The position numbers and the translations under genes were made by a program. The notes under the pieces were generated by a model. That model ran no database searches. It was given only the letters and a program-made list of their open reading frames with translations, and was not told the origin of the DNA. From assembly GCA_977016875.1 (NCBI GenBank), contig CDRNST010000104.1, forward strand, positions 1,550,001 through 1,614,000: a DNA stretch of 64,000 nt, in the 5' to 3' direction. Positions 1 to 58,124 of this stretch are shown one piece after another (within the stretch, counting starts at the first letter, position 1; every line of letters starts with the position of its first letter). This DNA comes from Pavona decussata. Its lineage: Eukaryota.

Positions 1-656
1 ACCACTACACTAAATACCATAAACTTAGCAAATGATGTGAAAATTAGTTATTTATTCCAAAATCACTAATAACATTGTTTACATCGATGGAAATTCATTT
101 CTACTCAGCATTTGAGAAAGAAAACACTTATCAAACGAGGATTTATTATTTGGTCAGAGAAACCTCCAAAATTACTCATTGAAGCATGTCTCATAAAAAA
201 ATGAAAGAGAACTGAAGCTCACTCAACTGCATGTCATGTCACTCAAATCACTTGCGCGACACGTGAAGATGACCGACTTTCTGTTAAACCCTTCTGTGCA
301 GTTGTGCGTGTTGGACATGTGCACTTGGAAAATCGCGACACCAATACTAAAAAAGAATAACAGAACCAAATCCAAGACTTGGTGCCTTTCAGGCCCAAGT
401 AATAATACTACTAGCTTCTATCACGAATACCATTCTCTGGTTGGCTAAGCTACTCGCTCTATTTTTCCTCCTGTCCCCAATTAGTTTACAGTAATTTAAA
501 TTACATGAAACATGAGTATGCAAATCATACTGTAAAATGAAGTCCCCTTTGGGCTAGCTAAATTTCCCTGAGTCAATTCTAATCTTGTTTGTCCTTGGCA
601 GAAAAGAAAGACAAAAATTGTACATGTTGTTCAAGGGTTTTCACTATTCCCCACAG

Positions 657-884
657 GAGGACTTTCAACAGTATCGAATTGACTGGGATGGGCCACTTCC
701 AGAAGAAGCTTCTTCAGATGGCGTGTTCATGGAGGTGCCAGAAACAGGTTGTCCATTAGGTCCAGATCAGTATCAGCAACTTGCCACCACAGTCCTTCCA
801 CTAAGGGAAAGCAATTCTTATGCGATAGACATCTATTTAGAAACAGTAATGTTTGTTAACACTCATGCTGTAACTGCACCATAA
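657..884 (+). pseudogene. C-terminal exon of an IS3EU-type (integrase-core) DDE transposase
   Basis: The translation YRIDWDGPLP...MEVPETGCPL...LPLRESNSYAIDIYL resembles the C-terminus of integrase-core/IS3EU transposases. An acceptor (ttccccacag) ends at about 656. The exon converges on a HECT remnant. Confidence 0.55.
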
Positions 885-2392
885 GCTGACCTACCACTAC
901 AACATCAGTAAAGTACATACAAATCTCCCAAGTGAACATAATGTGAGCTAGCTGATACTTCAATGGCAGGCATTGAAAGTTCTCACTTTTGTGAAAACAT
1001 TGCCAGCGATCAGTTAATGAAAAAGTGCCTAAATGAAATCAGGGAAACCTGGAGCTTTACTCAGTAATAACCTTATTACATACTTGGTACAGAAAATTCC
1101 CCCACATCGTTTAAGCAGTATGAATTCCATTTTCTGCATTCAATGTATTTTTAACTGTTGACTGTATGGCCACAACAAGAAGCATTAAAAAGTTGAGTAA
1201 GGTGACCTTTTATAGGGATAACCTCGCGGTCCCCCTTTTCAAATATGTATCGTATATCATGTTTCAAATTATAAAGTATTATTATTATTATATTATAAAT
1301 ATATTATTATTATTATTATTATTATTGTTGTTGTTGCTCTACAGGGTTTGAAATTCCAGTTAATTGCAAACAGAAATATTGAATTTCGTAGCAAAACCAA
1401 CCGTTACGTTGCGGCCTACTATGGCGATCTCGCAGGGCTCAAAGTCACGCACGACCACAACAGGTACTTCCATGGCCAGCATATTGCATGTTAATTTATT
1501 CTACGTTGGAGTGAAAGGCCAATTGAAACAACAGTGAAGTGTATTTCCTTGCAACTCTTCACAGCTAAGCACTACGGACCTTTTCTTTACAATTTATATT
1601 TACTGTTGTTTATTGTTTTTCTTCAACGAAGCAGCTTGTGGTGAATGACACTTTTTTCTTTCTTCTATGGTTATTAGGTTTTTGTCAGGGTTAGGATTAT
1701 TTATTAGTTATTAAAGGTAGTGTGTGGTGAAACGTACTTCGAATTTCAAGAGTCTGAATATGCCTTTAATCATTTTGTAATAATGTGAATGACTATAATG
1801 TAGGCAATATCTTTTTACAATGGACAACTTCCTGTATATTACAGAACTTCAAACATTTAGAAATCACGAATTAACTAAAGCATTTAACTTGTACATTTCA
1901 GCCATTAAAAACTGTAACAATTTTTACCATTAATATAAACTGTAACATTTTCAAATTTGTGCTATCCACTCCAGTCTACAAATACTTAACAACACTAAAA
2001 GTGCCCAGTCATTTGACAGAGGGTTGCAGAGAGTTTTGAAGAGGGAGTATGGGACAGACCTTGTGCTTTTGCAACTACAACTGTACATGTATTTACGCTT
2101 TACCTTGATTGGAATGACTTCTCAGTCATTCAAACAAAATCTCAGGATTGATTTCGTATTTCAAAATCAAAGATGCCTTCTATCTGAAGTACTTGAAAGA
2201 TAATTTGATCTCTAGGAAGCAAAAACAGTGCTACAGTGTAACATTTCTTTCAAATTTCAGTGCACCTCTGTCTCCCGCCTTTTCTCCTGCAGAAGTGAAA
2301 TGTTTGGATCCTAGTTACACTTAATACATCATGCATTGTTGTGTGTATTAATAAAAGCAGACAATTTCAATTTTACCCAAAGGTCTAACGTG

Positions 2393-2785
2393 TCATAATA
2401 ACAATTCTTTATAATAAACACTGGCGAATGCCTTCCCACCATTATCACAAACTGCCTGTAGTGCAGCCAGGAAAGTATCATGGTCAGAGAAACGTCTTGG
2501 CAATGTGACTTTCTTAGTGCAAATAGAGGAAAAAATGGAACCAACATCATCAAACTCTACCCTGATCGCTCCTAAACCAAAGTCTGGTAAGCAGGGTACC
2601 CCAATGGCGAAGGTAAGGAATGCCTTAAGAACCCTTGGTGTTGCACCGACTATGAACTCGTTCATGTGCTCCATGATGTTTTTTTCATCATCACTCATCT
2701 CTGATGGAACTATCAGTATTTCCTTGACATCAGAACCCTGCACTTCTTTTTCTCCTGCAACAAATAGCTCTTTGAAAAGTTCTTC
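2393..2785 (-). pseudogene. C-terminal HECT-like (G2E3-like) E3 ligase exon, copy 1
   Basis: ELFKELFV...LKAFLTFAIGVPCLP...FSSICTKKVTLP...FLAAL matches the HECT C-lobe, and the putative catalytic Cys (SIC) is retained. Paralogous to 35200-36265. Confidence 0.7.
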
Positions 2786-3099
2786 GCGATATTTTTTGCA
2801 AATCTTCGTTTTTTTAGAAAGATTTTCGTTTTTCGGATTGAAATGGTTTTAACGTTCATTCAGTGTTATTCACAGTTGATAAATATTTCACTTCAATAGC
2901 AAATTGCATAACTCACTGTGTAAATTCATAAAAAGCGATATAAACAGTTATCGAAACAATAAAGGATTGTTGAATTCTTTGGCGATGTTCTGTTTGTTCA
3001 GTGTTTTATGCCATTTACGACATTTGAAGACTGGGTTTTCTTTATGTGATGCCACAAGCTCGTAGCCTTAACATACACAACTAACGTGATGACTTGAAA

Positions 3100-5630
3100 T
3101 GTGGGTTATTCTACCCTCCCACCACTGTCACCTTTTTAGTCATGTCAGTAGTACATCATGTCCTCATTTCGCCTTTTTCTAATGCCTCTTTCTCTGCGGC
3201 TTTGAATTTCAGTTGCTTCAACATCAATATATTCGACATGCTTGCTTTCAACAGGGGACTCTGCTTGCAGCTGGTCATTCTGTTCTTGGTTTTCAGATTC
3301 TACAAACTCTGTAACTGTACAAGCGGTTGGGGTTTGGGGCCTTATAGAGTTCAGTATTCGTAAGTAGCACTTGTCTGTTAAGTGTATAATATCATTATTG
3401 TCTCGAGTATGTCATTGTCACTCAAAGGAAACAGAATTCCTTTCTTTAATACTCTTCTGGATCCTACGGCCACAAAGCAGCCAAATTGTTTATCTGTCGT
3501 CTCAGTAAAGGAGTACCACAGAACATTGATTTTGGTCTCATTGGGGTTATCAAATACATCTGATCCCGTCATAGTAATTTAGAAATTTGCTCTTGGGATG
3601 TCATCTGGAGCAAGCATATCGTATCCCGGCTTGACTACGGGACGACTCCCTTTTGAAACAGGACTTGGACAGGATGATGCTCCCTGTTTACAGCTTCTAC
3701 TACATTTTCTTCTCCACACTGTTCTCTTTCAAAGTGCATTCTGGAACTGGTTACTTCTGTCTGACTCATCCCCTCTGCATTGGCAAATGATGGAAGGGTG
3801 CCAGCGTCATATTCACTGATATCTCTGACAGACCGTTGCCGAACGCCACCACAATACTGCCTCTGCTATTCCTGCAGTTCCTGTAAATCTTCAGGTGGGA
3901 TGGGGGCTGTTGTTGGTGGTTTGACAACCGCCAATAGTCTTGTTGTTATTGTTGTTGTTGACAGGCCATTGGATAGCGCACTGAAGGTGTTAGGTCTGGA
4001 TAGTGGGCTTTTTTGGGTGTGAGGTAAAGGAAGGATGCATGTGTCATCCTCTTTACTGTCTCCTGTATTGTGGGCATCAGCAGCTGGGCATATTGCAGCA
4101 TGTACGGCATGGCATGACGACCACACACATTCGAAAAAAATTGTTCAATCACAAGGGTCAGGATTGAAAGAGACCTAAATGCTTGTTCGTAATCTGCAGT
4201 TAACTCGTGCTCGTCTACATTGCTAAATAGATCCTTCAGTTCCTTCAGGGTGTCAGTGACCCAGGTCACAGCCTCCACGGTTATGTAAGCTGTGAGCCAT
4301 GTGGCCCTTCAAAGTTTAGAGTTGGGTTCTGAACGTGTTCCCTGATATTGCTGACAAGTTCATTGAAGTATTGCTGGACCTTGGCCATGTTGGTGATAAC
4401 CTCGACAAGTCCAACTTGCCTAGTGTACCCGTATTTGGTCTTGTCAGAATGTACAGAAAACACCTGAAACATCTTTTGGATGTTTTTCAAGTATGAAGCC
4501 AATGCGGATGTTGGAGTGATGATTCTCAGAGTTTGTGATCCTGTGTCACACACATACACTGTATGCCCCTTAGTTGCCAAGCCAGTGGGTTGTGCATGAC
4601 TACTTGACGGCGACTTTCCACTTGCTGTCTTCAATTCTCCATTTCCAGAAATTACAGTGACCTCACCGTTGGGTGTTAGCTGTTTGACCAGGTTTCGTTT
4701 CCTGTCCGTGAAGATCAGATTCAGGCCATCAACGGCTACGCCATGTGTTACGGCACACTGATTGTTGGTTATCTCTTTCTGTGGCACTATACCATCAAGA
4801 CAAAGCTTCGTTTTACCACCAGACTCTTCGTTCAAGTCAGCAACATAGAAACAGCTCTCATGGTATGGCAGTCCATGTGGTAAGCAGTTCATTGGTAAGT
4901 CTTTAATTCGTCGAGCAGTTGCCTGGAAGGCAATACCAGAGATGGTTAGCTCATACACTGACTGATTGTTGGCAGTAAAAAGAAGGTCCAGGCATGAGGC
5001 CAGAACTTTTGGATGGTGAATTTGTGCATTAACAATCTTCAAACGTATAACTAACATTTTCTTGTCCTTTCCTTTATCTCCAACACCATTGTTGACATTG
5101 TTGTCTTCCCTGTGAATTTCCTGTGGTATCGGTGTCATCTGAGGTATTTGTTCTTGATGATCCTCAATCCATCTCTGAAGTTTTTGTCGTAGAGCAGGAC
5201 AACTGTAGTCAGTAAGCTGGGCATCTTTCAGAATAATGCCTTTTTCCTCAGTAAAGGCAAACAATTCACGCTTGCTTATCCTCTTGGGAGAAATAGTTGC
5301 TCTTTGGAAAGATCACAATAGCAGATGCCTCTTGCCTCAGTTACAAATGCAGTTCCATTCATGTAGTGCACGTTGAGCGGGCTTTGAAGATTCTGTGCAA
5401 TAACTTCAACGTTAGCAGGATAATGCAATCGAGCTTTAAGCACCCTGCCTTTGTTGTGGGCGTGCCCTTGATCAAGTACTAAAATGGTACCAAATGGTCC
5501 TACATTGACAGAGGCTGGCCTTTGCACGATTCTCTTTGCATTTCCTCGCCAAACCCAGTAAGGCTTAGGTAAGGGGGTGGCAGTGACCATCGTAACATCT
5601 CTTAGAAGATCGATGACGCCTGGCTGGTAG
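3100..5630 (-). pseudogene. 3' two-thirds of a P-like transposase gene with NHL repeats and a SAP-like domain (divergent homolog of 49872-53262)
   Basis: ORFs 5276-5668, 4281-5264, 3946-4278 and 3866-4126 align colinearly with the second copy: KARLHYPANV/KACLHSPVDK, QPTGLAT..VYVCD/QPIGICT..IHICD, FSVH, GPHG/GPQG, LTLVIEQFFS/MTLDVENCHS, ETVKRMTH..HYP/ESVKRVTH..WYP, VRQRSVR..GTLP/VRQRTVR..GTLP. Stops and frameshifts are present. Confidence 0.75.
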
Positions 5631-6418
5631 ATACAAAGTAATTCTTGAGTATGGTTTATCAATTTCATCCTTGTATCTCTTCAAGGTAAAGGGTTTCTAA
5701 GATCCAGGAAGTGTAAGAACTCAGTTTTTGTCACCGTACCGTAGGTGGTATAATGCTTTGTTACAGCTCTTTATAACATTTTTGTTGAATCGTTTGTGCT
5801 TGCCTACTGCTTTCCCCAGTAAATCGTCGGCAGCAATACACTGTGGGACGGTCAACGGCAGTGTGATTCTTCTCTTTATGCTCAGAACGCCATCCTTTAG
5901 TGTCATGACACCAATGTTGACCTTCACTTCTGAGTTCACATCTGACTTCTTGAGCACTCTAGGTCTCTTAGCAGTTTTCGGGCGTTTACTGCGAAAATAC
6001 TCCTTTCTATCCTTTTCTATGCGAGCTTTGAACCGTGTAAATGTTAATGGCGTTGTCCCACTGCCACTGGTCCTGTTTTACATCAACTGCACTAATGTCT
6101 CTCTTCAAGGCACTATCATTTAGACTTATTGTCTTCCACACTGGTGATAAAACTGTGCTGCTGAGACATTCTGTTCCACAAGAGGAGCAGAACATTTTGA
6201 GGAAACAGAAGTTGTGGATAAGCGCTCGAAAAATCAAGGCAAGATGTAATGGCGGGAGTATGCAGCAGAATAACTGGAATGTGCATGTGCATATTTTCTG
6301 TGGTTTAATATCGAGCAACACTTTTTAAATTTGCAGCAACCTTTATAAATTTGCAGCAACTTTTATAAATTTGGAGCAGCCTTTTTTATTTGTAGCATGT
6401 CCCTTGTGGGCCACCATA
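5630..6418 (-). mobile_element. 5' end of an IS3EU-like element, including the start of its accessory (HECT-family N-terminal) ORF
   Basis: The minus-strand terminus TATGGTGGCCCACAAGGGACATG at 6418 is TAYGG-type, followed by about 21-bp aatttgcagcaac subterminal repeats (6328-6400). The degraded ORF reads MFCSSCG...VKVNIGVM...LPLTV...LPGS.KPFTLKRYKDEIDKPYSRITLYL. Confidence 0.5.
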
Positions 6419-7415
6419 GAGTGTTCAATTTGATCACGCAAAGTTTGGTAAATTTTCAGATCTTCGTTTTTTCTGTGGTGATCTTCGTGTATTCAATGTC
6501 TTCAGAGGTATGTGACAATCATACGTACAGTATGTATCTGACCTTGGCATTTCCCAATTGAAACATATTCTGTTTGCTTGCTGTTTATCGTCAGTTGTAA
6601 ATTTACACTCAATAAACCAAAATGGTTGCTGTCTCTGTATATTAAACACTTTAATTTGAATGTAAGCCTTGCACTTCACTGTCCTTGGATGACTCCTTAG
6701 TCTGACTTTAAGTGAGTGACATTTACAGCTGTTGGTAATCATCACAACAAAAGTTATTTACAAACGTACAGATAATGTCATGGAAAGTCCACAGTCAGAG
6801 AGAACACTTGTTGTCTCATCAAAGTCCACAAGATCAACAACCTGTGCAACCTCGAATAATGAAAAACAAATTCTACATTGGTGTAGGTAAGAATTTTTGC
6901 ATATATTTTTTTTACTCCAATGTCCCAGTATCGAGTATCTTGGGAAGCTAAAATAGCTAGTAAAAATAAGTTTCACTTTTCTTATTTATATTCCCATCAC
7001 ACAGTAACAAGTATCTTCAGAAGTTAAAATGTGTTAACTAAAACCTCAGAATTATGTTTCCATGCATGCTCTCAAGAGAGTCTAACAAAAATGATATCAG
7101 AGGCACGGGTTTCATTAGAAGCCAGCAACTTTTGAAAACCACGTCTACTTACTGGTAGTCAGAATTTACCTCTAAATGCTGCCAACGTTGTCTAGATTTT
7201 CACTCAAAATGATAAAAAATATTAATCAGGTCCTCACCTACTTTGGTTAGCTCAGATAGCTATTTACTGAAACCCCTGAGGAGACATACATATCTATCTT
7301 GCCAGGTCACATCAAACGTAACTTGTCTAAAGCTCTAAATTCTATGATTTCCTCAAAATAGGATTTTATTAGCATAGTTTCCAAACACTTTATAGTTTTA
7401 AACTTTTCTCTTACC

Positions 7416-8170
7416 TTAGATGTAAAATATTCCATCTGAATTGAGCAGTCTTTGAGGATAACTCCTTTGATTGCTTCATGTAAATCACCTGTGACCAAAT
7501 AATTATACACTGCTGAACTAAATACAGGAAATCCTGGTCCTCCCTGTAATATGCTGTGCACTATGATGGTCCCAACCAGCTTCATAACACCAGATGCTAC
7601 CATATGTCACAATCATAGACTGGACTTCGGTATGTATCACCCTAAAAAAAGGTGTCTGAAATTACACTCAGTAGTTGAGTATAAAATTGTCGAATGACCT
7701 CCCTCCCCCCCCCCCCCCCCCCCCGTGTCTGCTGCTTGTTCCTTGTATAGAATTCGTAGCTTCTCTCTTGGGTCAAAATCTTTATCTTTGTAATAAGCCA
7801 TTGCATCATTCATAATGTCTTCATCTATCTTTAATTTCTCTCTTTGACCTTGAGAAAAGTTTTTCTCAAGATTTTGCAACTCAGACCTGAGGTTAGGCTC
7901 AATTCCCGCTGAGCCTAAAGAGATGTCTGCAGTGTCACTAGAGTTTCCCAGTGGTTTACAAGGTGAATGCATCGTGTCATTTTCGTCATCATCATCATCA
8001 TTATCATCAGTGTCAATGTTCTCAGTAGTAGGTAACAGTGACATGACAGCCTGATTGAATGACCCCTCCACTTGAAGGCAGCTTTCAAGAAATCTCGTTT
8101 TTCACCAGGAAACATTTCTGAGAGGTAGTTTATTTCTCTCGCAACGGCTAAGGCATCATTATCACTGCTA
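7416..8170 (-). pseudogene. HECT-like E3 ligase exon, copy 1 (N-lobe)
   Basis: EQAADTGG, MKLVGTIIVHSILQGGPGFPVFSSAVYNYL. Motifs are near-identical to 37369-37947. Frameshifted at a poly-C run near 7700-7724. Confidence 0.75.
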
Positions 8171-8269
8171 AGAATCCAAAATGTTTGAATACAGTTAAGT
8201 GTATAATACTAGAAATACAGAATGATCAAACAACTACAGAAGAGGGCTGCTTTGCTGACTTGTCAAATG

Positions 8270-9965
8270 TCATAACAACATTCTTAGTGTTCTCGCTGCT
8301 TCAGTAGCTTCAATAGAACGGAGTGGCTCTGGTTCTAATACAGATATATCATCATCTAAATCGTCTGCCTCTTCTTCTCTTTCATGGTTGGCCGAATCCA
8401 TGGACTGGACTGCTCCCAATGCTTCCCGTGTCGCCTCTTTGTCTGTTGGTTGACATTCAGTCACAACATTGTTATCTAAAGATACAAAGTCACTGGATGA
8501 TATCTCTGCAAGAAAGGGACAGTGATGGGTAATGCTTCCCCATAGGCCTCCGCCAGATTCATTTGTTTCTTCTTCCTCATCCGACTCAAATGGATCATCT
8601 GAGGGCTCTGCTACTTCATCTGGGTATCCTGCTTTATTCCAGCAGTTGCTCATTGTTGTGATGCTTACATTGTCCCAGGTGTTGCCCGTTATAAAAACAG
8701 CATCTTTGAGGTTGATTGCTTCAACAGGTTTATTTTCATCTAAGCACTGCACATTCCTTCTGATCATTGTCTTGCGATAACAGACTTTAACATTCTGGAT
8801 AATGCCTTGGTCCACCGGTTGTAACTTGCTTGTGCAGCTGCGAGGAAAGAAGATTAACTTTACGTTCGTCAGACCAGCGACACAAACATGAGAAGACCAG
8901 TGATCTATAAATAACAGAATATGGCGGTTTGTTACTCTCATTTGTCTGTCAATTTGATGAACCCATTTTTCAAACAGAGCACTGCCCATCCGAGCTTTCA
9001 TTTGAGACTCATGGGTGACAGGAAGCAAATTCATATTAATGTACTTAAAACATCTGGGTTTGGCATATTTTCCTATCACCAAAAGGGGTAGCCTCTCTGT
9101 GCCATCCTGGTTGCAGGCCACAAGGACTGTCACGCGATCTTTACTTTTCTTACCACCAGTGCATTTTTCTCCTCTTAAGTTTAGTGAATTTTTTAAATAA
9201 TTTATTTACTTGTAATACTACAGTACTTACATTACTACATTACTTGAATACCGCAGTACTTACAATACTACATTCCTTACAATACTAACATTTCCATCTT
9301 TCCTCCCAATTATTTACAACCCACTATTAATTAGCCTTGTTTTCTGATACTAAAGACTTGCAAAATGATACTTACGATATACTTCAACTGCTGAAAACTG
9401 CTCAAGTTTAGTTTTTGAGTCGGGGTAGCTTTCCACATAAATCCAGTTTTGTCAGCATTGAAGTGATCTTTCATACTGTAGCTGCGGCAAAAATCCGGGA
9501 GACGCTCACTCCAAGTTTCAACAATACCAGGATCTACACTCTTCTCTTCACCACATACAGCTTGGCCTGTAATTCCATGTCTTTCCTTTAACTTATCTAG
9601 AAAGCCATTACTTGCCTTGAAGTTCTCATGCCCCAACTGTTGTGCAAAATACTGGGCTTTTTCTTGCAAGAGTGGTCCACTAACTGAGATATTCATGGCT
9701 TGAACCTTGCGGAACCATTCAGAGAGCACTTTGTCCAGATCTGAAAAAGTCGACTGTTTCATCTTTTTTTGTTTCTCTTTGTACAATCCTCCTTCAAAGG
9801 CACTAACAATGTCGTCCTTCTTCTTCATAATGGTCGAGATAGAAGACTGCGACAAAGGCGGGTCAAAACGTTTAGCCACAACAGCGTCTTTCTCCGCAAT
9901 CTTAATTGAGAACTCGTCTCTTCTTTGTCTCTTGTTTCTTGGACTTCGTCGACTGCGATGTCACC
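8270..9965 (-). mobile_element. Degenerate Tigger/pogo (TIGD4/6-like) transposase
   Basis: CENP-B HTH (LSEWFRKV...SGPLLQEKA...FKASNGFL), FNADKTG, VLVACNQDG, LLFIDH, LQPVDQGII: a DDE_1 domain split by an insertion at 9186-9403. Confidence 0.9.
9186..9403 (-). mobile_element. Short insertion, probably a 5'-truncated non-LTR 3' end, inside the Tigger ORF
   Basis: Flanked by the direct repeat aagtttagt (9177-9185 and 9404-9412). Contains a low-complexity tactac/tacaatac tract. Confidence 0.6.
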
Positions 9966-12278
9966 GTTAAAGTAAAGTTGCTTAAAACAAGATTGAAAAA
10001 TCTTGTTTTAAGTTCCTGAGATAAGATTTTCCAACCTCAAAACAAGTTACCCAAAATCTCAAATCAAGAAACCCTTGGATTGAAACAAGAATTTATTTCT
10101 CATTTTAAGATACAAAAAATAAGAATCTTTAAACTGAAAACAAGGAACCATCAGATTGAAATAAGAACACATTTCTTATTTTAAGGTACAAAAATAAAGA
10201 TCTTTGAACTTACAACAAGAAAATTGTTCTTGATCCAAGCAAATGTTTTAAGTTAAAGTGTCTCGAAATAAGGACATTAATTCCTAATTTAAGTTAACCA
10301 AAATCAAAGAGTAACTAGGCATGAGGACTGATGCATCCCTGTCACTGAAAAAATGTACAAAACTCAATTATTATACAATCATAACTTTGACTTACACTTG
10401 TCAAATTAGTGTTTGACACTAGAATCCATGTATTGGTCTACTAAAACCACAACTGGGTATTTAAAATTGCTTTTATGTTTGAGCAATCTTTAATAAATGT
10501 TGAGGTACTGGTCAGTCTAATTGCTGTTTTTTTTTTTTTAACTACTGGTCTGACTGACAAATCCAATGTCTTAAGTACATGAAGTTAGTGCCAAACACTA
10601 CATTTTAACAAAGATATATAATAGTAAATTACAAAACTACTGCTTCTGTTAGAAGAGATAAGCTATAGACTGTAAACGTACTTAAAGTTGGCCGTAGCCT
10701 TGAAATATCAACTGCCAGGAAGCATAATTTCACACCAGCCAACCAGTGGAGCTAAATTAAGTGATACTACAATCCTTAAATTTTTGGAAGCTGATCTGAC
10801 AGTGGCACAAGTTAATGGCAAACAAAAGACAGTTCATTACTGTAACCCAAGGCATTATAACGTATATAAAGGTTCTAAAGGTGATTTAAACTTACAAACT
10901 GTGATCACAGTCAAACAACGAACAATGACAGCTCATATGTAGTTGATACTCTACCACCATCAGAGTCTTTATAGTATAAACAAGGAATGTTAACTACCAA
11001 AAATTAACCTCTAGAGGCTTTACAGAAGAATCCTGCTCTCTAAAAAGATTAATACTTTCCACTTCAGCTGCTAGGAGTTGTTTTTTTTTCTATGCTGGTT
11101 GAAAAGTTTATTCTCAGTTTGTTTTAAAACATAACTCTTACGTTTCGGAACAATACCAAGGACATGTTCTTCCAAGAATTTGTACATGTTTTTTTCTGTT
11201 TCTCCATACTGCAAGTTGAAAGCAAAATAAACTGCTAACAACGTAACCAGAGATGAAGTAAAAATAGAGTGATATGCCAGTGGCTGGCACTCACAAAGTA
11301 CATCCTTCTCCAAGATGACAAAAATTTGTGTGTTGTCCACTCTATCACGTACAAATGGTTCATCCATTGAGAAAAGTAAATGTGGTAGTGCAGAGGGGAC
11401 TCTTGTTCTCAGGAATCCCTCCATCTTTTCACCTTCCTAGAAGAAAACATTAACTTTAGTTAACATAATCAGCTGAAGATTAGATCGTTATAATGCATAC
11501 ATGCTCCCTATGTTTTGGGCAAGTTGTGCGATGACAATCTACTTCTCCCTATTTTTTCAGCCAGAAAAATACAATGCATTGTATGGTTTACTGTTGAAGG
11601 CTTAATCGATGATGCTACTAGCCTCCCAAAATGCCATTAGTTCAATGCATCATGCAAAAAGAAAGGACATTAACCATATTAAGTTTTGCCACTGAGCCAG
11701 CACGTCTAACCAAACAACATTGTAATTTTTCATCAAAAGGTGGCTCAGCTCTCACCGATTTTTCTGCTTTATGAGACAAAACGAGATCTTGGCAGAAGGG
11801 TTAAAGAGAACTACCAAAAAGGGATAGACAGGTGCAAACATTGAAGCATGGACAAAGCAAGTATATCACCTTCGGCAGGAAAAGCACATGTCAGAGCTGC
11901 TCATCCACATTGCAAAATACAATTATTCTTGTTCTCACTGACTAATAATAATTAATAATTAGGTTTTCTTAACTTTACTTAATCTTAGTTGAATAGATTT
12001 TACTTGATATTTTTTAAGTCTCCCCAATTAGTAGGGCACTTGTGCTCAGCTATTAAGATTTGAGACTTAAATAAAGTTGTTATTATGTGCAGTTGATAAA
12101 CGTATGGATGCTTAAATAGAACCACATAGGGCGCGCAGCGTGACCTATGCGATCTGAAGGAACTATAAAAAGAAAACTGCTGAGTTAAAAAAATTAACGA
12201 TAAAATATTAAAATCTTATAGCCAATCTCAAGCTCTCTAATACTAAAACTACATTGAGCTCCTATGCTATTCGCTCAA

Positions 12279-34900: not shown

Positions 34901-35355
34901 GTAATAGTAAATGAGAAAAAAGTAGACGGCAATCGACATGAACGAATCAGCACGAAAACATGAAGCACCCTAGAATACGATCAATTTGTATGCAAGATAC
35001 GACACTGGCAGAACCTAGGACAAAAGCCAGATCAAGTATCCAGGAGCAATTAACTATTTTAAATGAAATTTAAAATGCTCAAATTAATTAATTAATTAAT
35101 TACCGTATCAATTAACTTATATCACTAGACTATGTGGTCTTGGTAGGCACCACTAACCCTCTGGTCAACTTTGTTGAGCCTATTCAGAAATTTTGTCCAC
35201 ATGATGGCATGGGGCCCCAGTAGCAAATGTGAAGAATTCTTCCAGAACCTCTGGTGTGTCTGAAGCAATGAATTCATTCAAGAGTAACATTGTGTTTCTT
35301 TCAGCATCACTCATTTCAGTTGGAAATAGTAAAATCTTCCTAACTTCATCTCCCT

Positions 35356-36090
35356 GCTGCTCCCGCTGCGGACTACCTTAACTAATCAACCAAATTTACT
35401 TTCACAAAGAAAAGAGTTAAAAGAAACATACCCGCCTAAAAGATCACACTTGATAAACAGCTGCCATCTTGATTTTTGCCTCTTTATTCGACCCAGGCCT
35501 TCTTTAATCTCGCCCCAGTCTTCATAAATATATATATATAAAAAAAGTGTGGAAGATTGATCCGTGGGACTTGCTTGCATACTTCTCGCCTGCATAATCA
35601 ATGAATGGATATCAGCGACGTCATCAATCACTTATCAAAAATATCCCAGCCGCTGATAGTTTACATTTCATGTAGATCAGAAAATCAATTACCACTTTTG
35701 GGGCCGGTAAGACCCGGTAACAGTTTTTATTGTTATGTTAAGCGTAAAAATGTTTTTAAGAACTTACTTATAGCTGTGCTTGGAAGTCACCATTTGAAGA
35801 TTAACCTAGCTTAGTAGGCCGTTGGGGACGTAGTCTCCTACATAGAAGCACATAGAGACATTGTGTGACGATACAAGAATGGCTGCGTTAGAGACTACTG
35901 GGGACGAGGTTTGCAATGAAGAAGAAGGCCTGGGTCGAGGATAGTGACGCAATCAAGATGACGGCTGTTTATCAAGTGTGATCTTGTAGGCAGGTACGTT
36001 TCTTGTAACTCTCTTCTATGTGAAAGTAAATTTAGTTGATTAGTTAGGGTAGTCCGCAGCGAGTAGTCTGTGGAGCGGGGTCAGTTTTTT
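35356..36090. mobile_element. MITE with about 150-bp imperfect TIRs inserted in a HECT exon
   Basis: cgctgcggactaccttaactaatcaac...cgacccaggccttctt (35365-35503) is the reverse complement of 35921-36061. Confidence 0.8.
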
Positions 36091-48245: not shown

Positions 48246-49529
48246 TTATCCCTATACTTTATTGGCGTCGTATGCATGGCACCAAGCGCACGTAGACGAG
48301 TAGAAAAAAAAATAAAAATTTTAGAATTCATTTCCGTCGAAATGTTAACCCCATGTATAAACTGTTTTCCGAAAATGAAATACATTTTAGGGTACCAAAC
48401 AAAAAGATGACAATCTGTGGCTCCATCGCGGTGCCAAAACTGTCACAAGTAATTGAATATTCCGCCACTTCACTTCGACATACTTTTTTCGTAGAGTCTC
48501 TTTCACAGACATCAGTTAACAGTCAGGCAATTTGCTTTTGTTGAGGTCTACTGAAAGAAGGTTTTGGTGGGATGTAGTTAGCGCAAAATGGCATTATGAA
48601 CACAATACATGTGCCATAACTACCCTCATCCTTCAGATTTGAAGAATATTGTAGTGCCTCTGTACAGTTGACTTGTGAGGTGGTAGGCGGGGAAAACTAA
48701 TTAAAAATTACTCAACAGGGAAAAGGTGTTGTCCATTCCTAAAAGCTCGCATTCAATTCAAAGTACCACAGCCCACAGTACATTTTTACGAGGAAGCAAA
48801 TGTCATTTCCTTTCCTCTTGGCTTCATTTAAAAGTTCGATGTCTGCGTTTTGTGCAGCTCTTACCAGTGTTGGGTCCATTATAATTGGCATGTTCCTGTG
48901 GAGATCTCGCAATTCATGGCTGGCATTTACGTTCTCGTACTTGAAGTCTTGATTTATTCCAACATTTAGGGCCTTCGCGAGGCTTGGCTGCCCTTCATAT
49001 TGCTGATGCTTTTTGGACAGACTGGTTATCTCTGCTATAAACTGCAGTGATAAAATTTCCCTCCAGATGCTCTGCTAGAGAGCGATGTATAATGAGGAGG
49101 ACATTGGGGGGTTCTGAACACCGCAACACCGCAAAAAATATTGCCGAACACCGCATCACCACAAGTAAAGTCTGTGGAACACTGTCACCGCAATATCTAT
49201 TTTTAGTCTGATGATTTAAGCGTCAGTACAGGATAAAGCCTTCAAGATTTTGCCTTTGTCCTTAAGAAAAGTTGTGAAACAAACATAACGAGGCCAAAGC
49301 TGTAGTTACTCTGCATATGCCTTTTGATGTTGGTTGTTACGTACACTTTGACGCTAGAATACTAGAAGATCTATGAACTTCAGCCGAAAAATTACCGCTG
49401 CCTCGTGCTACAAGAACATTTCCGGAGAGTTGTGTGTTCTGACATTGTCACAGAAAAATACTCCTAGTCTCCTTTCTTGAATATTTAAGTTTCAGGCTTT
49501 AAAACCTTTTAACTAATGGTACTCGGGCA

Positions 49530-49857
49530 ATAGGCCGTATGCATGATCACGTAACATGCCCGAAAGGCAGTATGGTAGTTGTAGTCACACTCAAATCCAA
49601 GATGGCGTCAATAGTGCTAGTAGCGGGGGAAAAAGAAAAAGTACGTAGTATTTGACCTATCTGAAGGCTCAAACAAATACCCTGAGAAGCTACTCGACCG
49701 CCCGGCCACATCAGAACACTTGTCAGCATTTCTGCCATTTAAATTTCCCGCTTCGGGGAAATACAACGCCATATTGGATTCGTGGGTGACTTCAACTACC
49801 ACAATGGACGTTCAAGCCGCAAAAGCATTGTTTTACGTCATTATAGATAAGGTTTAT
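49530..49857. mobile_element. MITE inside the 3' region of the 8-kb element
   Basis: Internal inverted pair ggtagttgtagtcacactcaaatccaagatggcg / cgccatattggattcgtgggtgacttcaactacc, with imperfect outer TIRs. Confidence 0.65.
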
Positions 49858-49871
49858 GAGGATGGAAAAAA

Positions 49872-52800
49872 TTAAAAAAATAGGCGATTATTAAAATGAA
49901 TGGCTCTTCCAAAGCGTGACTTTGCGCCAAGTAAAAATGTCGTGGAGCTTCCAATCTCTTCTTGTAAATAGTCTTCACTTCCGTTGCTGGCCCCTGCATC
50001 ATCCTCATCATTACTTTGGTCATATTCCGTGTCATCTCCCCTTTCATCGATTCTAGCTTCTTCTTCTTCTTCTTCTTCTTCTTCAGTTTCCTCGAAAGAG
50101 ACATTTATAGCCTGTTTGGCACTGATGCAGTGTCGTTGATACATGTACTCAGGTAGAGTGCCATGCTTGGCCATCGTCATCTCCTGGCGCACTGTCCGCT
50201 GTCGCACTGCGGCTCCATACGACGAGGCCCAATCTCGTATAACATCGCAATGTGCCTTTGACATCTCAACAACAGGAAGTGGCTTGATCGAAGGCACCTT
50301 CGAAAATGGAATGGACTCCTCCGGTTTTGGGTACCATGATTTTCTGCTTGTGTGGTAGTAAGCCGCCCAGTGGGTTACCCTTTTGACTGACTCTTTCATT
50401 GTAAGACCAAAAGAACGTGAATATTCCATCATAGACATGTTTGCCTGTTTGATGTGCACGGTGGAATGGCAATTTTCTACATCAAGTGTCATACAACTAA
50501 GGAGATTTGTTGCATCGTAATTGAATGGCTCTAACTTGCTGTACAATCTTTGTAGTCCCCATTCAACAAGTGCAACAGAGGCAACGGTCTTGGCGGAAAC
50601 GTGACCCTGAGGTCCATTAATTGCGCCTGTAATGCCAGTGCTTGTCCTGATATCGTTGGTGTTCCTATCTAGAAGTTCTTTGCATTGGTGGACAAGCGAA
50701 AGCGCTTCATCGGCAGACTTTACAGAGTAGCTTGCTCCTTTACAATGGACAGAAAAAGCGTCACAAAGCTGCCCAATGGAGTTAACAAATTCAGCGCACT
50801 CAACCATCTTCGTACAGATTTTGATATAATTCGTCTGGGCATCACAGATATGAATGACACTTTCTGACTCCGTGCAAATGCCTATTGGCTGTCGAAACCG
50901 ACAGTCCTTTACTTTGCCATCAACATTCCCTTCCTTTCTTTCGCTGCCGGCAAAAAGTTCTACCTCTTCATCTGTCTTGATCTTCCACACCAATGCGTGC
51001 TTTTGGTTACTGAACAGGATTTGTGAGCCAAACCTAGTCAACATGCAAGGTTCATCGTCCAGTTGAACGATAGTTTTACACTGTGCGCTATCAAAAGAAA
51101 CTTTACTGATCCCCTTGCAGTGCGATAAAAAGAGGCTTCCTTCACACAAACACATGCTGTAGATCTTTCGTCACAAATGGTCATACTTAATAACTTCTTG
51201 CATGTTTACCCCTCTCAGTCCGACGCCATCCTTTTGCACTTGAAAAGAGACAATGACTCAGACGTCCTTCCTTGCAGCGTAGATCAGCTCATCATCTCGC
51301 ATAGCATAGCTTCAAAGGAAGGCCGTCTTTCGAAATTCCAGAAATGAACTTCATCATTCTTTACGTTATTCTGATTGTATTTGGATTTGAGGGTTAAAGA
51401 GTAGCGATTCAGCCTTTCCTTTAATTCTGCAACAGTCCCCGTTGGCGTCAGCTTTAGTTTATTTGCAAGGTTGACGAAATCATCTTTTTTCTTTGGCTTG
51501 GTCAAGATGTTAATTGCCCCATCTGCAAACGGGATTGCTTTTATAGGCCCACCGTCAGATGTTAGGAAGATGATCACATCAGCACAGTGGAGATCCCTTG
51601 CTTTAAGTTGCTTCCCGATTGCTGTTATCTTGTCCACAGGACTATGCAGGCAAGCTTTGTGTAGCGTAGGGAAGGAACTCTTCACATCATATGACAGAAA
51701 TGCTATCCATCCGTACCACGGAATGGCAACACTTATTGGCGAAGGAAACATACCCAATTGGTTGTCGGCGGAATATTTGTCTAGCTCTGGGATGATTGTA
51801 TGACAGACGTAGCCAGCCTTTTTCAACTCATTGGTCAACTTAGTGTTGCTAAGAGTGGGAACGGAAGATGGGTCTTGTCTATCTTTATTCTTGACATGAT
51901 CGTTTTTGTGGATAAGCTTTCTGAAGGTTTTTTTTTGTTTTTTTGTATGAGCGGTTTCTCAAAGTACGTATCAAAGCCAAATTACGTTCGCCTTTACATT
52001 TCAGCCACCAGTTTGAAAAAGCAACTTTCATGCTTTTGCCAACATGTGGACAATCTGGCAATACAGACAAAAATCCAAGTTCAGGATCTTCGGTTCCGGC
52101 TTCTAATTTTTCTTAAAGTGTCTCAAGGGCAGCCTTGTTTCCGCTTTCGCAATCACTACAAAGTATTGCCACAACTCGACGACAACAAACAGTGTTTGCT
52201 TCCCGACATGCATCACAGAAGCACAACGAGGGTAAGTGGCTAACCTGTCCCAATAATGTGCATTCATCGCATACTCTTTTCGACTCGTAGCACTCTTCAC
52301 AAAAGCTATTGCAGTTAATTCTTTGGGAGGAGATAATATGACGAGTATGAGGCGCTTGTTGCTGGCATAATTCGCACGCTTGTAGAGTTTTTATGTGTTC
52401 TCTGAAAAGATCTGCCATAGCCTCGCCAGTTTTGCCACTTTGTGTGGTGTAATCAACTGCCACAGGAAGAGAACAAAAGTTATCCAGAGATGTCAAAGAA
52501 GAAACGATTGCTTCGGTAACAATATTTTCCTTGAGATACTCGGGAGAGGGTGATGGATTCTCGTGAATATCGACGGGTTTTTGAGACCAATGTTTTCCTT
52601 TAATCGAGGATCGAACTTAATAGCCGGTTTTAAAGCTGTCCCATCATTGGCAAGAGCACAAGGGATCACTATTAGCTCAGGTGTTTTGATCAACGGTTTA
52701 GCTTGTAAATTTTTTAATAGCTCTAGGTGGCCTAAAGATAGTGGCTTGATAACACCTGATTCTGGTGTGTATTCGTCCTGATACTTGGCACACACCGATT

Positions 52801-55800
52801 CCGAGGGCCCTCCAAGGTTCATTTTTTTATCTCAGATTCAAATGGCTATTTCGGCCATCTCCTAAGTTCATTGGCCCTCTGATGAAGCAGGTTGTGCGTT
52901 TGCCACCAAGGTAGGTGATTGTATTGAAAAATTCCACAACCTCTTGGGCATATTCGTGGAAAAGATTGTACATTATCTCCAACACATCATTCAGATATTT
53001 ATAAAAAATCCTTTCCTTTGATATCTTTCCTCGTTGAAGGAGGTCTTGTAACTTAACGCATACTGGATCCACCTGCTTGATGCCAATATGCACAGTGAAG
53101 AGGTCATCTTCGTCAATACTGTCATCCGACAGCATTTGGTCGACCTCAGTGCACGAGCAAACCCCCACAGAATCATCATCCATGTCTGAGTCAACGAGTT
53201 CCTCGTCAGTTCTGTCATCGTCCTCATAGGAATCCCATTCCCCTCCACTGGAGTCATATGTTCTAGACAAGAATAGTACAATTAAGGTTTTATTTTATCG
53301 TGTCAAGCAATTAAATACAGGACCATACAGTCGTAACAAAAACCAAAAGAATTAACTAAGGGTAATTTGGTCAATCAACAAAAATCGAAGATATTTCAAT
53401 GGCGTAATTGCCTTAAAGTCCTTAAACATAACCTAAAAAACCAACAACGGATTAAACGGCAAGTTTTACAATGAAACGTAAAATATCCATGAAATTACAA
53501 TATTTTGCCATGTCGTTCTATTTTTTCGATACATTTGAGCCGTTAGGAAAATACAGTGATGTGTTTGACAGACACAAAACTATGTTTACTTGTCACAATC
53601 ATCCAGATCTAGGTCCGAATCTCTCCTTGGCCTTTTGGTGTTTTCTCCTTCTCGTTAACTTTCTCTAGAGCTGTTCGTTTAGCCCCATGCATGTCCATCA
53701 GTTTCTGTTGACGCACAGTAGTTGCTGTTTTAGAGCTACACTTGGAGTAATGATCTATGACAACAAGAGACAAAATGAAAGAGGTTAGATAAAAATGTTT
53801 TTAACTCACCGCTTTATTGTTTTTCTACATTTCAACTATAATTATTAAAAGGTTATTTTATTACTACTTTTTGATAGTAAATGCCCACCTGACTCAGCTT
53901 CGTAAATATACATGGCAAATTTTTCGCCTGCATAATGACCATGAAGTTTTATAGAGTTAATAAATGGTTAAAAAAAGCGCAACTGCCGTATTCACGATTC
54001 TTTTTCGAGCCATGTATAGATAAAATAAAACCTATCAGGGGGGTCTTTTGCAACCTGTGTGGGACTTAATCTGGGATTACGTAACATAGCGTAAACAATC
54101 AGTAAAACTGAACTTACGTAGGTCAAAAAAGGCGATTCGTCCTTTCAGATCACTATCGTATCTCAGCTGTATATTGCGTTTGCAAGTGCCACACGTTATC
54201 TTCCATGGCCACTGTACTTCTTTGCCACTTTTCCCTCTTGTTTTCACAACTGCATGTTTGCCACATCTGATCAGTTTACTCCCGCATCTCTTGACCAATT
54301 CTAAACAGTTACGAGAAAGTGTTGATTGTCGAAATAAGCTATTTTCGATAGTATTACCCTCGATGCGATTTCTTTTGTTTTATTCCCCCAGGGCTCGGAG
54401 CCAAGCATGAATTTTTATATAATATATATGATATATTTCCACCATTACCTTCATTCAATTTTGTTTTTTCTTTCTCTGTGAGCTCCACTGGACCCATTGA
54501 AGGTGATATCGATGGTGTAGGCGTTAACGTCTTGCAGGAGCAGCTCTCCTTGATTTCAATTGTTGGACAGTTCTTGGAGAAAACAGTTTTAATAGAATAG
54601 ACAAAAACTGGAAGTGAGAAAAACAAAACAGGAAAAACATTCAGGCATTACAAAATTTATTATTCCTGCAGGTACAAAATCACTTGGTACAAAACTATAC
54701 AGCAACTTTTCGCTATTCCTATATTTTTAGATATACTCGCATATATTTCGCGCACCAGGTTGACAGGTGGGTTTTGTTGAACCCTGGCCGAGAAAAAGCG
54801 CTGTTGTAATAAAAAGGTGCACCCTCAAAGCAAAAAAGGAGTAACTTATGTTGAAATTTCTCTTTGCTTCTTAAAATTGTTGTTCCCTGTTTCAAATAAG
54901 AAAACCAACATAGACAGTGAAGCTCTACCTGCAACTAGACAATTTACGAGATCTAGTAGGACATCGAGAAGTAGTGCCATTACTTATATTCCTAACCGAA
55001 GCAGAACTCTTACTTATCAACGTTCATTTTTCATACGCGCGTGCCGCACATGGAATGTTCTTCCCACTGAGCTACGCACAAGTCACATCTCTTTAGCTTT
55101 ATTCAAAACTTTATTACTTCAATATTATAAAAAGGCTTTGAACTTGTACGACGCTGACGACATTAGAACTTGGAGAACAATCTGTCCTGTATAACACAGC
55201 GAGGTAACAGTCCTGTGTAACACAGCGAGGTCTCTCCTATGCCCGCCAACGTGCTGCTTCTAGCAATTTGGTCTCCCGCCTTGTCTCCTCTAGTTTTATG
55301 CTTACATATTAGTAGCTTTAGTTATTAAGCATTTTTTTTTTATATAAATAATTAACAAGGGATCCACTGTAATTGGCTACGCTGTAGTGGTCTCCCTGCC
55401 TAATTATTATATCTTTGTTTTTTTTTGTTTTTTTTTTGTTTCTATTGTTTGTTTCCATTCTGTTTGTATTTTAGTTAGGCGAAGCTAAATAAATAAATAA
55501 ATAAATAAAAAAAACCTGGTGTAAAAATTATCAGATCAAACATACTTCTTAACAGCATGAAAGAAATATGGTTAAACATACCTATTTAACAGGACCTCTA
55601 TGTTGTCTCCCAAGCCTAACCTTTTGGCTGTTTTCCGTATGCCAGAACGTTCGCTAAATTAAAAAGAACATATTTATGCCATTAGCATAACTGCAGCCTT
55701 ATATAACTAGCTCACTGCCTTCATAAGCTATTGACGGGGTTGACTGGTAAACAATCCTGAATAATGATACAACTCCCGGGTAGGGAAGGGTGGGATAGGA

Positions 55801-56794
55801 ATCGTCCAGTGTTTGGGTATGGGGGGAGGGGGTTTGAATTCCTGACCCTGTTAAGGCCAAAAATAACCTGAAAAGAGTACATTATTTTGGAAAATATCCT
55901 CCCCATAGGGCTTATAAATTATCTGGTCCTGAAAATGATTTCGTGTTGATTGATGACCTGCTAACCTGAATGACGAACCTCTCCAATTTTGTATTGCTCC
56001 AAAATACTAGACGATAGTGTTGTGCTATACCCTTTCTGAGACGTTTTCACACCCTGTTTAAGACACACTTGCTTGAATTATATACTCTATTCAGATCCTG
56101 TTCAGGGCAGAGAGGCCAAATTACATAAACCAGCGGCACGTCCCTGTGTTTACTTTTTAAACTCAGACCAGCCCGCGACTTATTTATTCTAGCCAAAACT
56201 AGTTTTCGCATTACCACGTTGGCTTGAAATTTTACTGTTTCTTTTTTTTTTTTTTTTTTCCTCGGTTATTTCTTTTTTAAATATATAAAAAAATACACAA
56301 GGGCAAGTGCAAAGAGCGGGAGAGTTCACTTTCCTTACCCCTCCCCCCGTCCCTCCCCCGTAGTCTCCCGTGGCCTGTTTATTTCCATTCACGCGCTTGA
56401 TATCAATAGCCATTTGACCCATTTGAGAAAGTAGACAAAAATAGTGATCTAAACAGTGTCTTAAAGGTCCCAGAAGATCAAACGACTGTGGAGTGAGCTT
56501 AGACCGATATTAGATTGACCTCCGTACGACCTTATACAGTTAAGACTAGCTACGATATTCAGATACAGAGACAATGCGTGTAACTTTCCAAATGCATTCT
56601 ACAAACTTCGCGAGTCTCTTTTCCTCCTTGTTTATGGAGCATCGAAATTTGTTTTTCCACCTATAGTTCTCTCCACCTTTGCCCTCCTCATAAAATAAAG
56701 CTACGCAATGAACTACGTATTCAGGATCGACAGGATCAGCTGCATCAGTCACGAGGTTTTCGCTCATCTTGCCTGATGGACCGGACGATGACAT
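49872..56794 (-). pseudogene. Spliced P-element/THAP9-like DDE transposase gene with a C2HC finger, Cys-rich insert, NHL repeats and SAP domain (frameshifted)
   Basis: Exons are about 56794-56583 (tentative), about 54575-54449, 54300-54118, 53754-53590 and 53262-49872. The last three introns have phase-compatible GT-AG junctions. Motifs: GGPSES..ESGVI..CALANDGTALKP..FD (D1), ILCSDCESGN (D2), PDCPHVGK (DxxH), TLDVENCHS (E), SAP-like LANKLKLTPTGTVAELKERL, NHL-like FAGSERKEGNVDG...FRQPIGIC. Confidence 0.8.
54905..55512 (+). mobile_element. 3' end of a CR1/L2-type LINE inserted in an intron of the 8-kb element
   Basis: RSRTLTYQRSFFIRACRTWNVLPTELR...FKTLL followed by an (AAAT)n/poly-A tail at 55487-55514. 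Confidence 0.75.
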
Positions 56795-58124
56795 GTGGTG
56801 ATCCGGGTCACGAAGGTCACGTTGCTTATCAAGTTACTTAATATAAATGAACAACAGGTGTAGGATTAGTGACGGGCAGCGTATTTAATATTAACTAGAG
56901 AGTATTAGAGAACCCTTAGCGTGTATTTTATTTCAAATCAAACATGATGGGGGCCAAATTTAGAACTGACAAGCATCAAAATGGAAACTGTGACACCGCA
57001 GACAATTTCGTTTCATCGAACACCGCAGACTTAAAGACGCAAACATCGCACACCGTGACGTTTAAGAATACCGCAACACCGCAAGCTGAGATTTTATTCA
57101 CCGCACAAAAAAATACCTAACACCGCAAATCCCCAATGTCCCCCTCTATAATCTTCGTGGGTTGTCCACATGCTCTTTTTTTGCCATCCTGGGGCAGCAC
57201 TTGCGCTTGCAGCAAGGGAAGACGCTTTACGTGTCCAGCAATAGTGTCCGTGTAACTGTTGAACCATAGCCCAGTTTTAACTTGGAACCGAATGAGAAGC
57301 CTGTATCTATCAGCGATGTGGTGTTATCTTCGCTTAACAGCCAAAATCTGTGATTTTTCACCAAACAGCTATGTGATGTGGAATATCTCTTTCAACACGC
57401 ATGTCCTGTCTCTGCCATTCAACTGAACCACATTTGGTGTACTGGAGATGGGCTTTAAGAGATTTTAAAGATAGTCTTTTTTCTTGGTACTCATTCGCCA
57501 TTTAAAAATCAATTTGTTTTACGGGTGCTTGGTGCAGTTTCGGCTCTGCGCTTGTCAGGAGCTTGTTTTTCTGGTCACCTTCCCGTCTCCTTCGGGCACC
57601 ATTTTTACAGCCACTGGAGTTCTCGTGCATGGACCAATGTCTTCCATGCTTTCGGATCTTACTTCCAGGTCCTGGATAAAGAAAGGTATGAAATCGTACT
57701 TTATTTCATATCACATACTTGTACATAAGGTACGAGTTTACGCTTTTTGTCTAAACATGCATATTAATACGTATAAAATTTAGATAATTTGATTGTCTGT
57801 CCCTAAACTTGTTTGCATGTTTTTGATAAGAGTAGTTATTGTAAATACTTATTGAAAGGCATTTAACTTCACAGCAAGATGGAGACAGTTGGTTCCAAAA
57901 AAATCTCATATTTTCAAATAATACAATCATAGAAGATACTTGCAAGTAATCTCTTTCATGTCATTAAACTAAACTATTGCCATTTTGCCATCAATGATAA
58001 ATGGCTCTTTTTTGGCTAGTTGTTTGTAATTAATTTTACCAAGTTGTCACTGTCATTGCAATTCTGCCTGGCTTTTCTAAGAATACCCTCCTTAAGCGTC
58101 ATCAATCTTGTTTCCACTCTCCAC

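Follow-up and report, generated by a model that had tools for sequence, protein, structure and literature searches.

The described systems closest to the elements considered here are the Drosophila P element with its superfamily (THAP9-like), the pairs formed by miniature inverted-repeat transposable elements (MITEs) with their autonomous partners, and IS3EU/GingerRoot. P is a cut-and-paste DNA transposon with terminal inverted repeats (TIRs) of 31 bp, target site duplications (TSDs) of 8 bp and subterminal repeated motifs; its transposase has a large insertion, which is a GTP-binding domain, between the N-terminal catalytic half and a helix bearing the conserved E in a (V/I)E(N/Q)(L/F)F-type motif. 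In MITE/autonomous pairs, such as mPing with Ping and Pong, all that the short non-coding copies have in common with a longer coding element is the terminal arms. IS3EU has TA..TA termini and a 6-bp TSD (PMC10045372), and the IS3EU/GingerRoot transposase is IS3/integrase-like. Here we analyse a 64-kb stretch of the coral Pavona decussata (C104:1550001–1614000 of a 602-Mb genome; hereafter the window, with positions counted from its first base), where minus-strand remnants of a transposase gene encoding an NHL propeller lie between 2780 and 6506. This segment very probably derives from the coding (autonomous-type) form of a DNA transposon family, here called R1, of which it is a decayed relic no longer able to move.

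R1 and its relatives, which we refer to as the NHL family, resemble P in being cut-and-paste transposons with TIRs, TSDs and subterminal repeated motifs, and in having a large insertion at the same place, before a helix with the same type of E motif. They differ from it in their TIRs, which are of 16–17 bp and start with GAG, in their 6-bp TSDs and in the insertion itself, which consists of a Cys cluster and a six-bladed NHL propeller interrupted by a SAP-like stretch, not of a GTP-binding domain. As in known MITE/autonomous pairs, short R1 copies share only terminal arms with the coding element, and one R1 MITE subfamily still holds the end of the open reading frame (ORF); unlike in those pairs, R1 has no active partner remaining in this genome, its coding relic being truncated and deprived of TIRs. 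With IS3EU/GingerRoot the family has the 6-bp TSD in common, but its termini are GAG..CTC and its enzyme is P-like.

Results

The window copy has the two arms of repeat family R1

The 13-mer ATCTTCGTTTTTT occurs exactly at 2802–2814 and 6460–6472, on the same strand, and with up to one mismatch it has four matches in the window against 0.3 expected, a number reached in none of 100 shuffles. Both surroundings are repetitive: 2780–2989 matches more than 40 genome copies at ~90% identity, all beginning at 2780 (two of these 3′-arm copies extend further, to 3023 and 3174), and 6419–6495/6506 matches at least 40, all beginning exactly at 6419. The segments 2780–3174 and 6419–6506 are the two arms of the single repeat family R1, whose copies measure 0.4–1.2 kb and, when aligned with their flanks, revealed a 17-bp TIR, GAGCCTCTCTATGGGTA, and 6-bp TSDs (ACAAAG, ACAAAT, ATAATT and ACTGTA). 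An initial annotation of the window, made from its sequence alone, had taken same-orientation motifs at about 2800 and 6460–6490 for subterminal repeats, and such they are, as parts of the R1 arms. The borders that it gave, 2783–6490, likewise match the arms; the tips, on the other hand, are absent and both TIRs are gone, with 32 bp missing at the 3′ end of the window copy and 19 bp at its 5′ end, and the R1 TIR has no match in the window at up to three mismatches.

The left-end 24-mer of R1, with up to two mismatches, has 81 matches in the genome and its reversed control none, and we estimate the short R1 copies, or MITEs, at about 60–80. One MITE, L046 (C191), shares 2780–3174 with the window and thus contains the 3′ arm along with the last ~9 codons and the stop of the ORF, as expected of a deletion derivative of a coding element. 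Some 29 of the 81 left ends sit in a single array on C39 (116139–869680), where they share a one-base variant (…CACAG) and a strand, with spacings of tens of kb, which points to tandem duplication of a large segment with one R1 copy in it.

The transposase gene appears native to R1

A word search with the 343-aa open stretch at 4284–5312 retrieved proteins of 86–93% identity in other assemblies, whose contigs were then inspected. Among them, L057, of 2847 bp, is bounded by perfect TIRs and TSD AGTTTT/AGTTTT, has an uninterrupted 404-aa ORF (family profile 619–995, E 4e-75) and is 89.6% identical to window 4826–2780. L058, of 3361 bp, has the R1 TIR (with one mismatch at one end) and TSD AAGAAT/AAGAAT, and carries the gene at 69% DNA identity. 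L059 keeps almost all of the coding sequence, matching the profile from 3 to 1103 in order; it reaches the R1 3′ TIR and shows 87.6% identity with window 5627–2780. Because L057, L058 and L059 hold the gene inside R1 ends, L046 keeps the end of the ORF and the end architecture is shared, the NHL transposase gene is native to the R1 element. The TIR and TSD that the window copy has lost can be read from its relatives, L057 and L058 giving 17-bp TIRs and perfect 6-bp TSDs.

Could the NHL/P-like fragment instead be foreign to R1, as filler captured by a MITE or as a different element nested in one? The interior of a typical 1.2-kb R1 copy is indeed unlike that of the window copy, which is a mosaic with one clearly foreign piece (5629–6418). 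Against such an origin, the same gene lies directly inside R1 ends in three independent copies from two other assemblies, the TIRs and TSDs of two of these copies being perfect; the last codons of the ORF and its stop persist in a MITE subfamily; and no internal TIR pair encloses the fragment, the window containing neither a nested TIR pair around it nor R1 TIR remnants at its borders. We consider a foreign origin very improbable, and take the gene as part of R1. Elsewhere in this genome, no R1 left end was found within 10 kb of another P-like ORF (place lists compared by eye), and the right half of the R1 copy on C276 (L055) has no P-like coding sequence.

Protein colinearity with the NHL transposase family

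The window also contains an 8-kb element of the same family (49088–57152), with TSD TATAAT, whose 427-aa ORF (49872–51155, minus strand) was compared with the locus by tblastn. This gave three colinear pieces (Table 1) with E ~1e-9 for a 10-kb target. We then searched the six-frame translation of window 1–10000 with a family profile built from 17 members, comprising ORFs of this genome and full-length homologues in other data, and all matches fell on the minus strand, in order. The stretch at profile 802–900, which is without any NHL blade, is significant on its own (2e-18), and the blades at 5297–5644 show 37% identity to residues 420–536 of L032, another family member. Pfam recognises a single NHL repeat in the window copy (E 1.3e-4), and its SAP model is not significant on the SAP-like stretch, which is colinear nonetheless. 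The colinearity is evidently real and far above what chance would give in these comparisons. It bears out the initial view of the locus as a second, highly divergent member of the 8-kb element's transposase family, with colinear protein, placed outside that element's clade (see below) and with no evident DNA identity to it (best blastn E ~1). Of the colinearity claimed across propeller, SAP-like region, sequence motifs and catalytic E, all stands as such, the SAP assignment lacking significance by Pfam; and, since profile 802–900 matches, the alignment is significant outside generic NHL blades.

Decay of the window copy and its C-terminal tail

On the minus strand from ~5960 to 2390, ORF pieces are strung in shifting frames. 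The window copy retains only profile positions 372–1125; positions 1–371, the N-terminal third with the P-like RNase H half, are absent from window 1–10000 and present in the relative L059. At least five frameshifts and two in-frame stops interrupt what is left (Table 1), down to the natural stop codon of the ORF at 3147–3145. Relatives read through these frame changes: P0025 spans 4293/4290 in a single frame, and the L059 and L057 ORFs cover 3860–3148 as one continuous frame. They are therefore mutations and not introns. The copy is front-truncated and broken, and it is inert, without function.

These comparisons also bear on whether the locus might be a host gene, that is, a domesticated NHL-SAP protein at a fixed site, in which the frame breaks would represent introns or errors in the assembly. 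Such a gene would fit with the locus being single-copy in this genome above 33% identity (its nearest paralogue here reaches only that value) and with its position among other ORF fragments on the minus strand. Its relatives, however, read through the frame breaks and have no introns, the window copy has in-frame stops and lacks the catalytic N-terminal half, and close relatives are bounded by TIRs and TSDs and differ in their flanking DNA, rather than being single-copy syntenic host genes without TIRs. We regard a host gene as extremely unlikely, and continue with the locus as an R1 relic.

The ~215-aa tail after GTLP, which ends in a conserved basic stretch followed by aromatic residues, is genuinely coding. 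A tblastn search of the window with the L032 C-terminal tail gave no match; the coding status of the tail was established through close relatives. The L032 tail is of similar length, a long tail being normal for this clade. The longer C-terminal extension remarked on in the initial annotation accords with this, given that the relatives L059 and L057 read it as coding through 3148.

A second repeat replaces the 5′ part of the gene

Homology to L059 stops at 5627, and window 5629–6397 is 89% identical to a locus on C233 (L040 1480–2258). L040 encodes a zinc ribbon (Pfam E 4.7e-4) in an ORF of 323 aa; the window version shows 72% protein identity to this ORF over residues 41–225, has six stops and ends at residue 225. 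Members of this zinc-ribbon ORF family match the genome at 70 places, some of them in open frames of 650–758 aa. Resemblance among the copies on C233, C66 and C185 ends at the position corresponding to 6418; this is therefore the true terminus of the second repeat (Z), and it abuts the 5′ arm at 6419. At ~5627–5641 the sequence jumps from the middle of the repeat's ORF into the middle of the transposase. The simplest history that would account for this arrangement begins with insertion of the element, followed by insertion of the second repeat ~100 bp inside the element's 5′ end; a single deletion would then have run from the middle of the repeat ORF to transposase codon ~371, removing the remainder of the repeat along with the first third of the gene, after which the copy would have decayed neutrally.

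The 5′ part had been thought to be replaced by an IS3EU-like end. The replacement is real, but what replaces it is a 20-bp satellite and a zinc-ribbon pseudogene (6418–5629); no part of it resembles IS3EU, whose ends are TA..TA, those of the present elements being GAG..CTC. In the second repeat (window 5622–6418; L040 on C233, 1176–2683) the 20-bp satellite is subterminal and upstream of the ORF, forming long arrays on C97 and C233, and the ORF begins with the zinc ribbon. A piece adjoining the C233 satellite is found inside the R1 copy on C276 (L055 3–206, 97%).

Shared end architecture and diversity of the family

Two further members in this genome, L033 (C258; 6.7 kb, TIR GAGGGGGGTGAATAGG, TSD TTACAA) and L038 (C8; 5.4 kb, TIR GAGGGGGACATTGGGG, TSD CTCAAT), have perfect 16-bp GAGG TIRs with 6-bp TSDs, and the GAGG TIR of the 8-kb element is near-identical; the TSD is of 6 bp in all nine elements whose TSD pair is clean and exact. 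Within 150 bp of each end, a 6-mer particular to the lineage (CGAAGA in R1, CGACGA in L058, GCGGTG in the 8-kb element and L038, GCGGAT in L033) occurs two to six times, four to six at all ends but one, in the gene direction, never reversed and almost never inside the element. The four CGAAGA/CGACGA ends of L057 and L058 have it two to four times forward and never in reverse. Between L058 (6318–9678) and L057 (7242–10088) the 17-bp TIR is kept though their DNA is 69–72% identical, and the 6-mers differ (CGACGA against CGAAGA); the tips and the subterminal sites are therefore under different constraints.

An intact R1-type element has 17-bp TIRs of the sequence given above, a 6-bp TSD and arrays of CGAAGA within ~150 bp of each end, in the gene direction. 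Its transposase would be of ~1100 aa, with an N-terminal RNase H half predicted to be closest in fold to the Drosophila P element transposase, followed by the Cys cluster, the six-bladed NHL propeller interrupted by a SAP-like helix pair, the catalytic-E helix and the long tail; the Cys cluster and propeller would stand at the position of the GTP-binding insertion domain of P. The subterminal 6-mers are putative transposase binding sites, and the short R1 copies may be deletion derivatives moved in trans by transposases of this lineage.

In this genome the 427-aa ORF has 106 matching places, ranging from 94% down to ~25% identity and many of them broken, and full-length homologues of 1099–1260 aa occur in other public data, the only named ones being uncharacterised Mytilus proteins. 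This agrees with the initial proposal that the fusion is an old, conserved architecture. In a tree of 20 sequences from profile columns 372–900, with frame breaks joined by X, the 8-kb element groups with L035, L033, L037, L034 and L036 (bipartition support 0.998), and the window copy lies outside this clade on a long branch (1.45), with a support of only 0.56 for its placement. The two lineages share domain order, GAG..CTC termini, 16–17-bp TIRs, the 6-bp TSD and gene-sense 6-mer arrays. They are deeply separate, with 25–37% protein identity and no DNA identity, and differ in their TIRs (GAGCC... in the window lineage, GAGG... in 8-kb-type elements) and in their 6-mers (CGAAGA against GCGGTG/GCGGAT); in contrast to 8-kb-type elements, the window lineage has the ~215-aa tail and is the only one here tied to an abundant MITE family.

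A further family ORF was observed in L031 (C86, 2375–5854, plus strand). It is uninterrupted over 1160 aa and begins past the N-terminal catalytic half, with the C-terminal E region retained; it contains the propeller part corresponding to L032 residues 516–741 three times and has three SAP stretches (Pfam SAP 1.5e-27, NHL 3.9e-26). It is a rearranged derivative or possibly an exapted gene.

Fold of the transposase and its relation to P

Fold tests were made on relatives, the window copy being without the N-terminal half. By profile, the propeller matches SOQ1 and NHLRC2 with E down to 2e-22, and a sequence-profile search of PDB returned NHL proteins only and no transposase. An AlphaFold model of the L032 ORF (predicted local distance difference test score, pLDDT, 74.6) has two blades, the helix pair, four blades and then long helices; with this whole 1074-aa model, the Foldseek list was filled by the propellers of Pizza, TRIM71 and NHLRC2. 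The domain is a genuine NHL propeller.

The N-terminal 403 residues of family member P0002 were modelled with 13 aligned sequences (pLDDT 68.8). The only PDB entries matching this model below 1e-3 in Foldseek were the P element transposase structures 6p5a (1.1e-5) and 6pe2 (4.1e-5), with VIA Z of 7.5 and 7.4, respectively, over 190–214 residues, against at most 5.3 for RNase H folds of integrase or reverse transcriptase type. TNP-like_RNaseH_N and other Pfam P-type domains gave no match in the L059 N-terminal ORF, THAP none in six members (the first 74 residues of the model have pLDDT <50), and no GTP-binding domain was detected, the insertion being the NHL propeller with its SAP-like pair.

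An alternative is that the family forms a separate DDE superfamily, whose RNase H core is merely the most P-like among the few solved structures. It would be in keeping with TSDs of 6 bp rather than 7–8, TIRs of 16–17 bp, the lack of detectable THAP and GTP-binding domains, a Pfam P-type model that stays below cut-off, and a VIA Z of only 7.5 with a root mean square deviation of 9–10 Å. Yet the P element transposase is the only significant Foldseek match and, with ~200 residues aligned, exceeds every other RNase H fold by ~2 Z units, and the weak Pfam match falls at the matching place in two members. A separate superfamily thus appears to us unlikely, though deserving attention, and 'P-like' is the best-supported reading of the modelled fold, short of proof of membership. 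On a broader level, and as a tentative proposal only, the family could be an undescribed superfamily-level branch of P-like elements in marine invertebrates, in which a zinc cluster, a SAP motif and an NHL propeller replace the GTP-binding domain and each lineage pairs its transposase with its own 6-mer. We came across no published description of an NHL-propeller transposase.

Several points weigh against an R1 origin of the window copy with a P-like enzyme. No TIR or TSD is demonstrable for the window copy itself, both of whose tips are missing. Moreover, L059 is without a detectable 5′ arm and has ~8 frame breaks, and no copy was found with an intact ORF plus both R1 ends. We only infer that this transposase mobilises the MITEs and binds the 6-mers. 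Finally, the link to P comes from a model of moderate confidence (pLDDT 68.8) with a middling Z, and TNP-like_RNaseH_N is below its cut-off (at best 16.6 bits against 24.6; E 0.01 and 0.18) at the matching place in two members.

Features of the locus and its neighbours

Table 1. Features of the R1 relic in the window, with the evidence for each (HMM, hidden Markov model of the family profile; UTR, untranslated region).
Feature	Position	Strand	Evidence
5′ subterminal arm of R1, with gene-sense CGAAGA motifs; outermost 19 bp including TIR gone	6419–6506	−	Genomic copies; L057 alignment (positions 20–74 of the TIR-bounded element)
20-bp satellite units, ending at the terminus of nested repeat Z	6314–6418		Repeat family D1; same-unit arrays on C97 and C233
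Zinc-ribbon ORF-family pseudogene fragment and upstream DNA (part of Z), in place of the transposase 5′ third	5622–6313	−	C233 identity
Transposase remnant, first two propeller blades (profile 372–485)	5297–5644	−	HMM E 1.4e-27; truncation point ~5627–5641
Transposase remnant, SAP-like linker, NHL blades 3–6 and helices (profile 485–798), frameshift at each end	4293–5300	−	HMM E 1.3e-41; Pfam NHL E 1.3e-4
NHL blades up to FSVH	4431–4727	−	tblastn, 427-aa ORF query
C-terminal catalytic-helix region, conserved E codon 4146–4144, KRxTH..YP (profile 802–900)	3973–4284	−	HMM E 1.8e-18
LVIEQFFS (E codon 4146–4144) through KRMTH..YP	3979–4170	−	tblastn, 427-aa ORF query
VRQR..GTLP and ~215-aa C-terminal tail	3148–3925	−	HMM matches in the two rows below; L059 and L057 ORFs
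VRQRSVR..GTLP, spanning an in-frame TAG	3785–3922	−	tblastn, 427-aa ORF query
Profile 928–976	3719–3859	−	HMM E 6e-3
Profile 1059–1103	3220–3402	−	HMM E 0.03
3′ UTR and 3′ subterminal arm; outermost 32 bp including TIR gone	2780–3147	−	>40 copies; L046; L057 alignment up to position 2815/2847
Frameshifts	near 5297–5300, 4290, 3950, 3640, 3405	−	Comparison with relatives
In-frame stops	3868–3866 and ~3575–3573	−	Comparison with relatives

ORF fragments at 2393–2743 and 7307–8071, both minus, flank the element on the same strand. The former belongs to a multi-copy family with 34 places, which include eight identical-scoring copies at 40% and window 35207–35356. By eye the two fragments had seemed HECT-like, an assignment that was dropped when Pfam and PDB sequence searches gave nothing. 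Beside the element, a 287-aa ORF at 8270–9133 on the minus strand (Pfam DDE_1, 6.7e-37) is a pogo/Tigger-type transposase remnant.

Discussion

The value of the window copy lies in evidence and not in function. New here are a second deep lineage of the NHL family, its exact ends as obtained from relatives, its MITE family and subterminal 6-mers that share one orientation and differ between lineages. As one 64-kb window contains at least two deep lineages, the locus shows the propeller-bearing P-like transposase to be an old, diversified family, and links one of its lineages to a MITE family of ~60–80 copies. With these exact ends (TIR, 6-bp TSD and co-oriented 6-mers), elements of this kind can be annotated in the genomes of cnidarians and molluscs, and assays of excision and binding can be designed. 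If the family is indeed a P-like branch in which each transposase is paired with its own 6-mer, the co-oriented 6-mers would imply asymmetric recognition of the two ends, and the lineages would offer a natural series of enzyme/site specificities.

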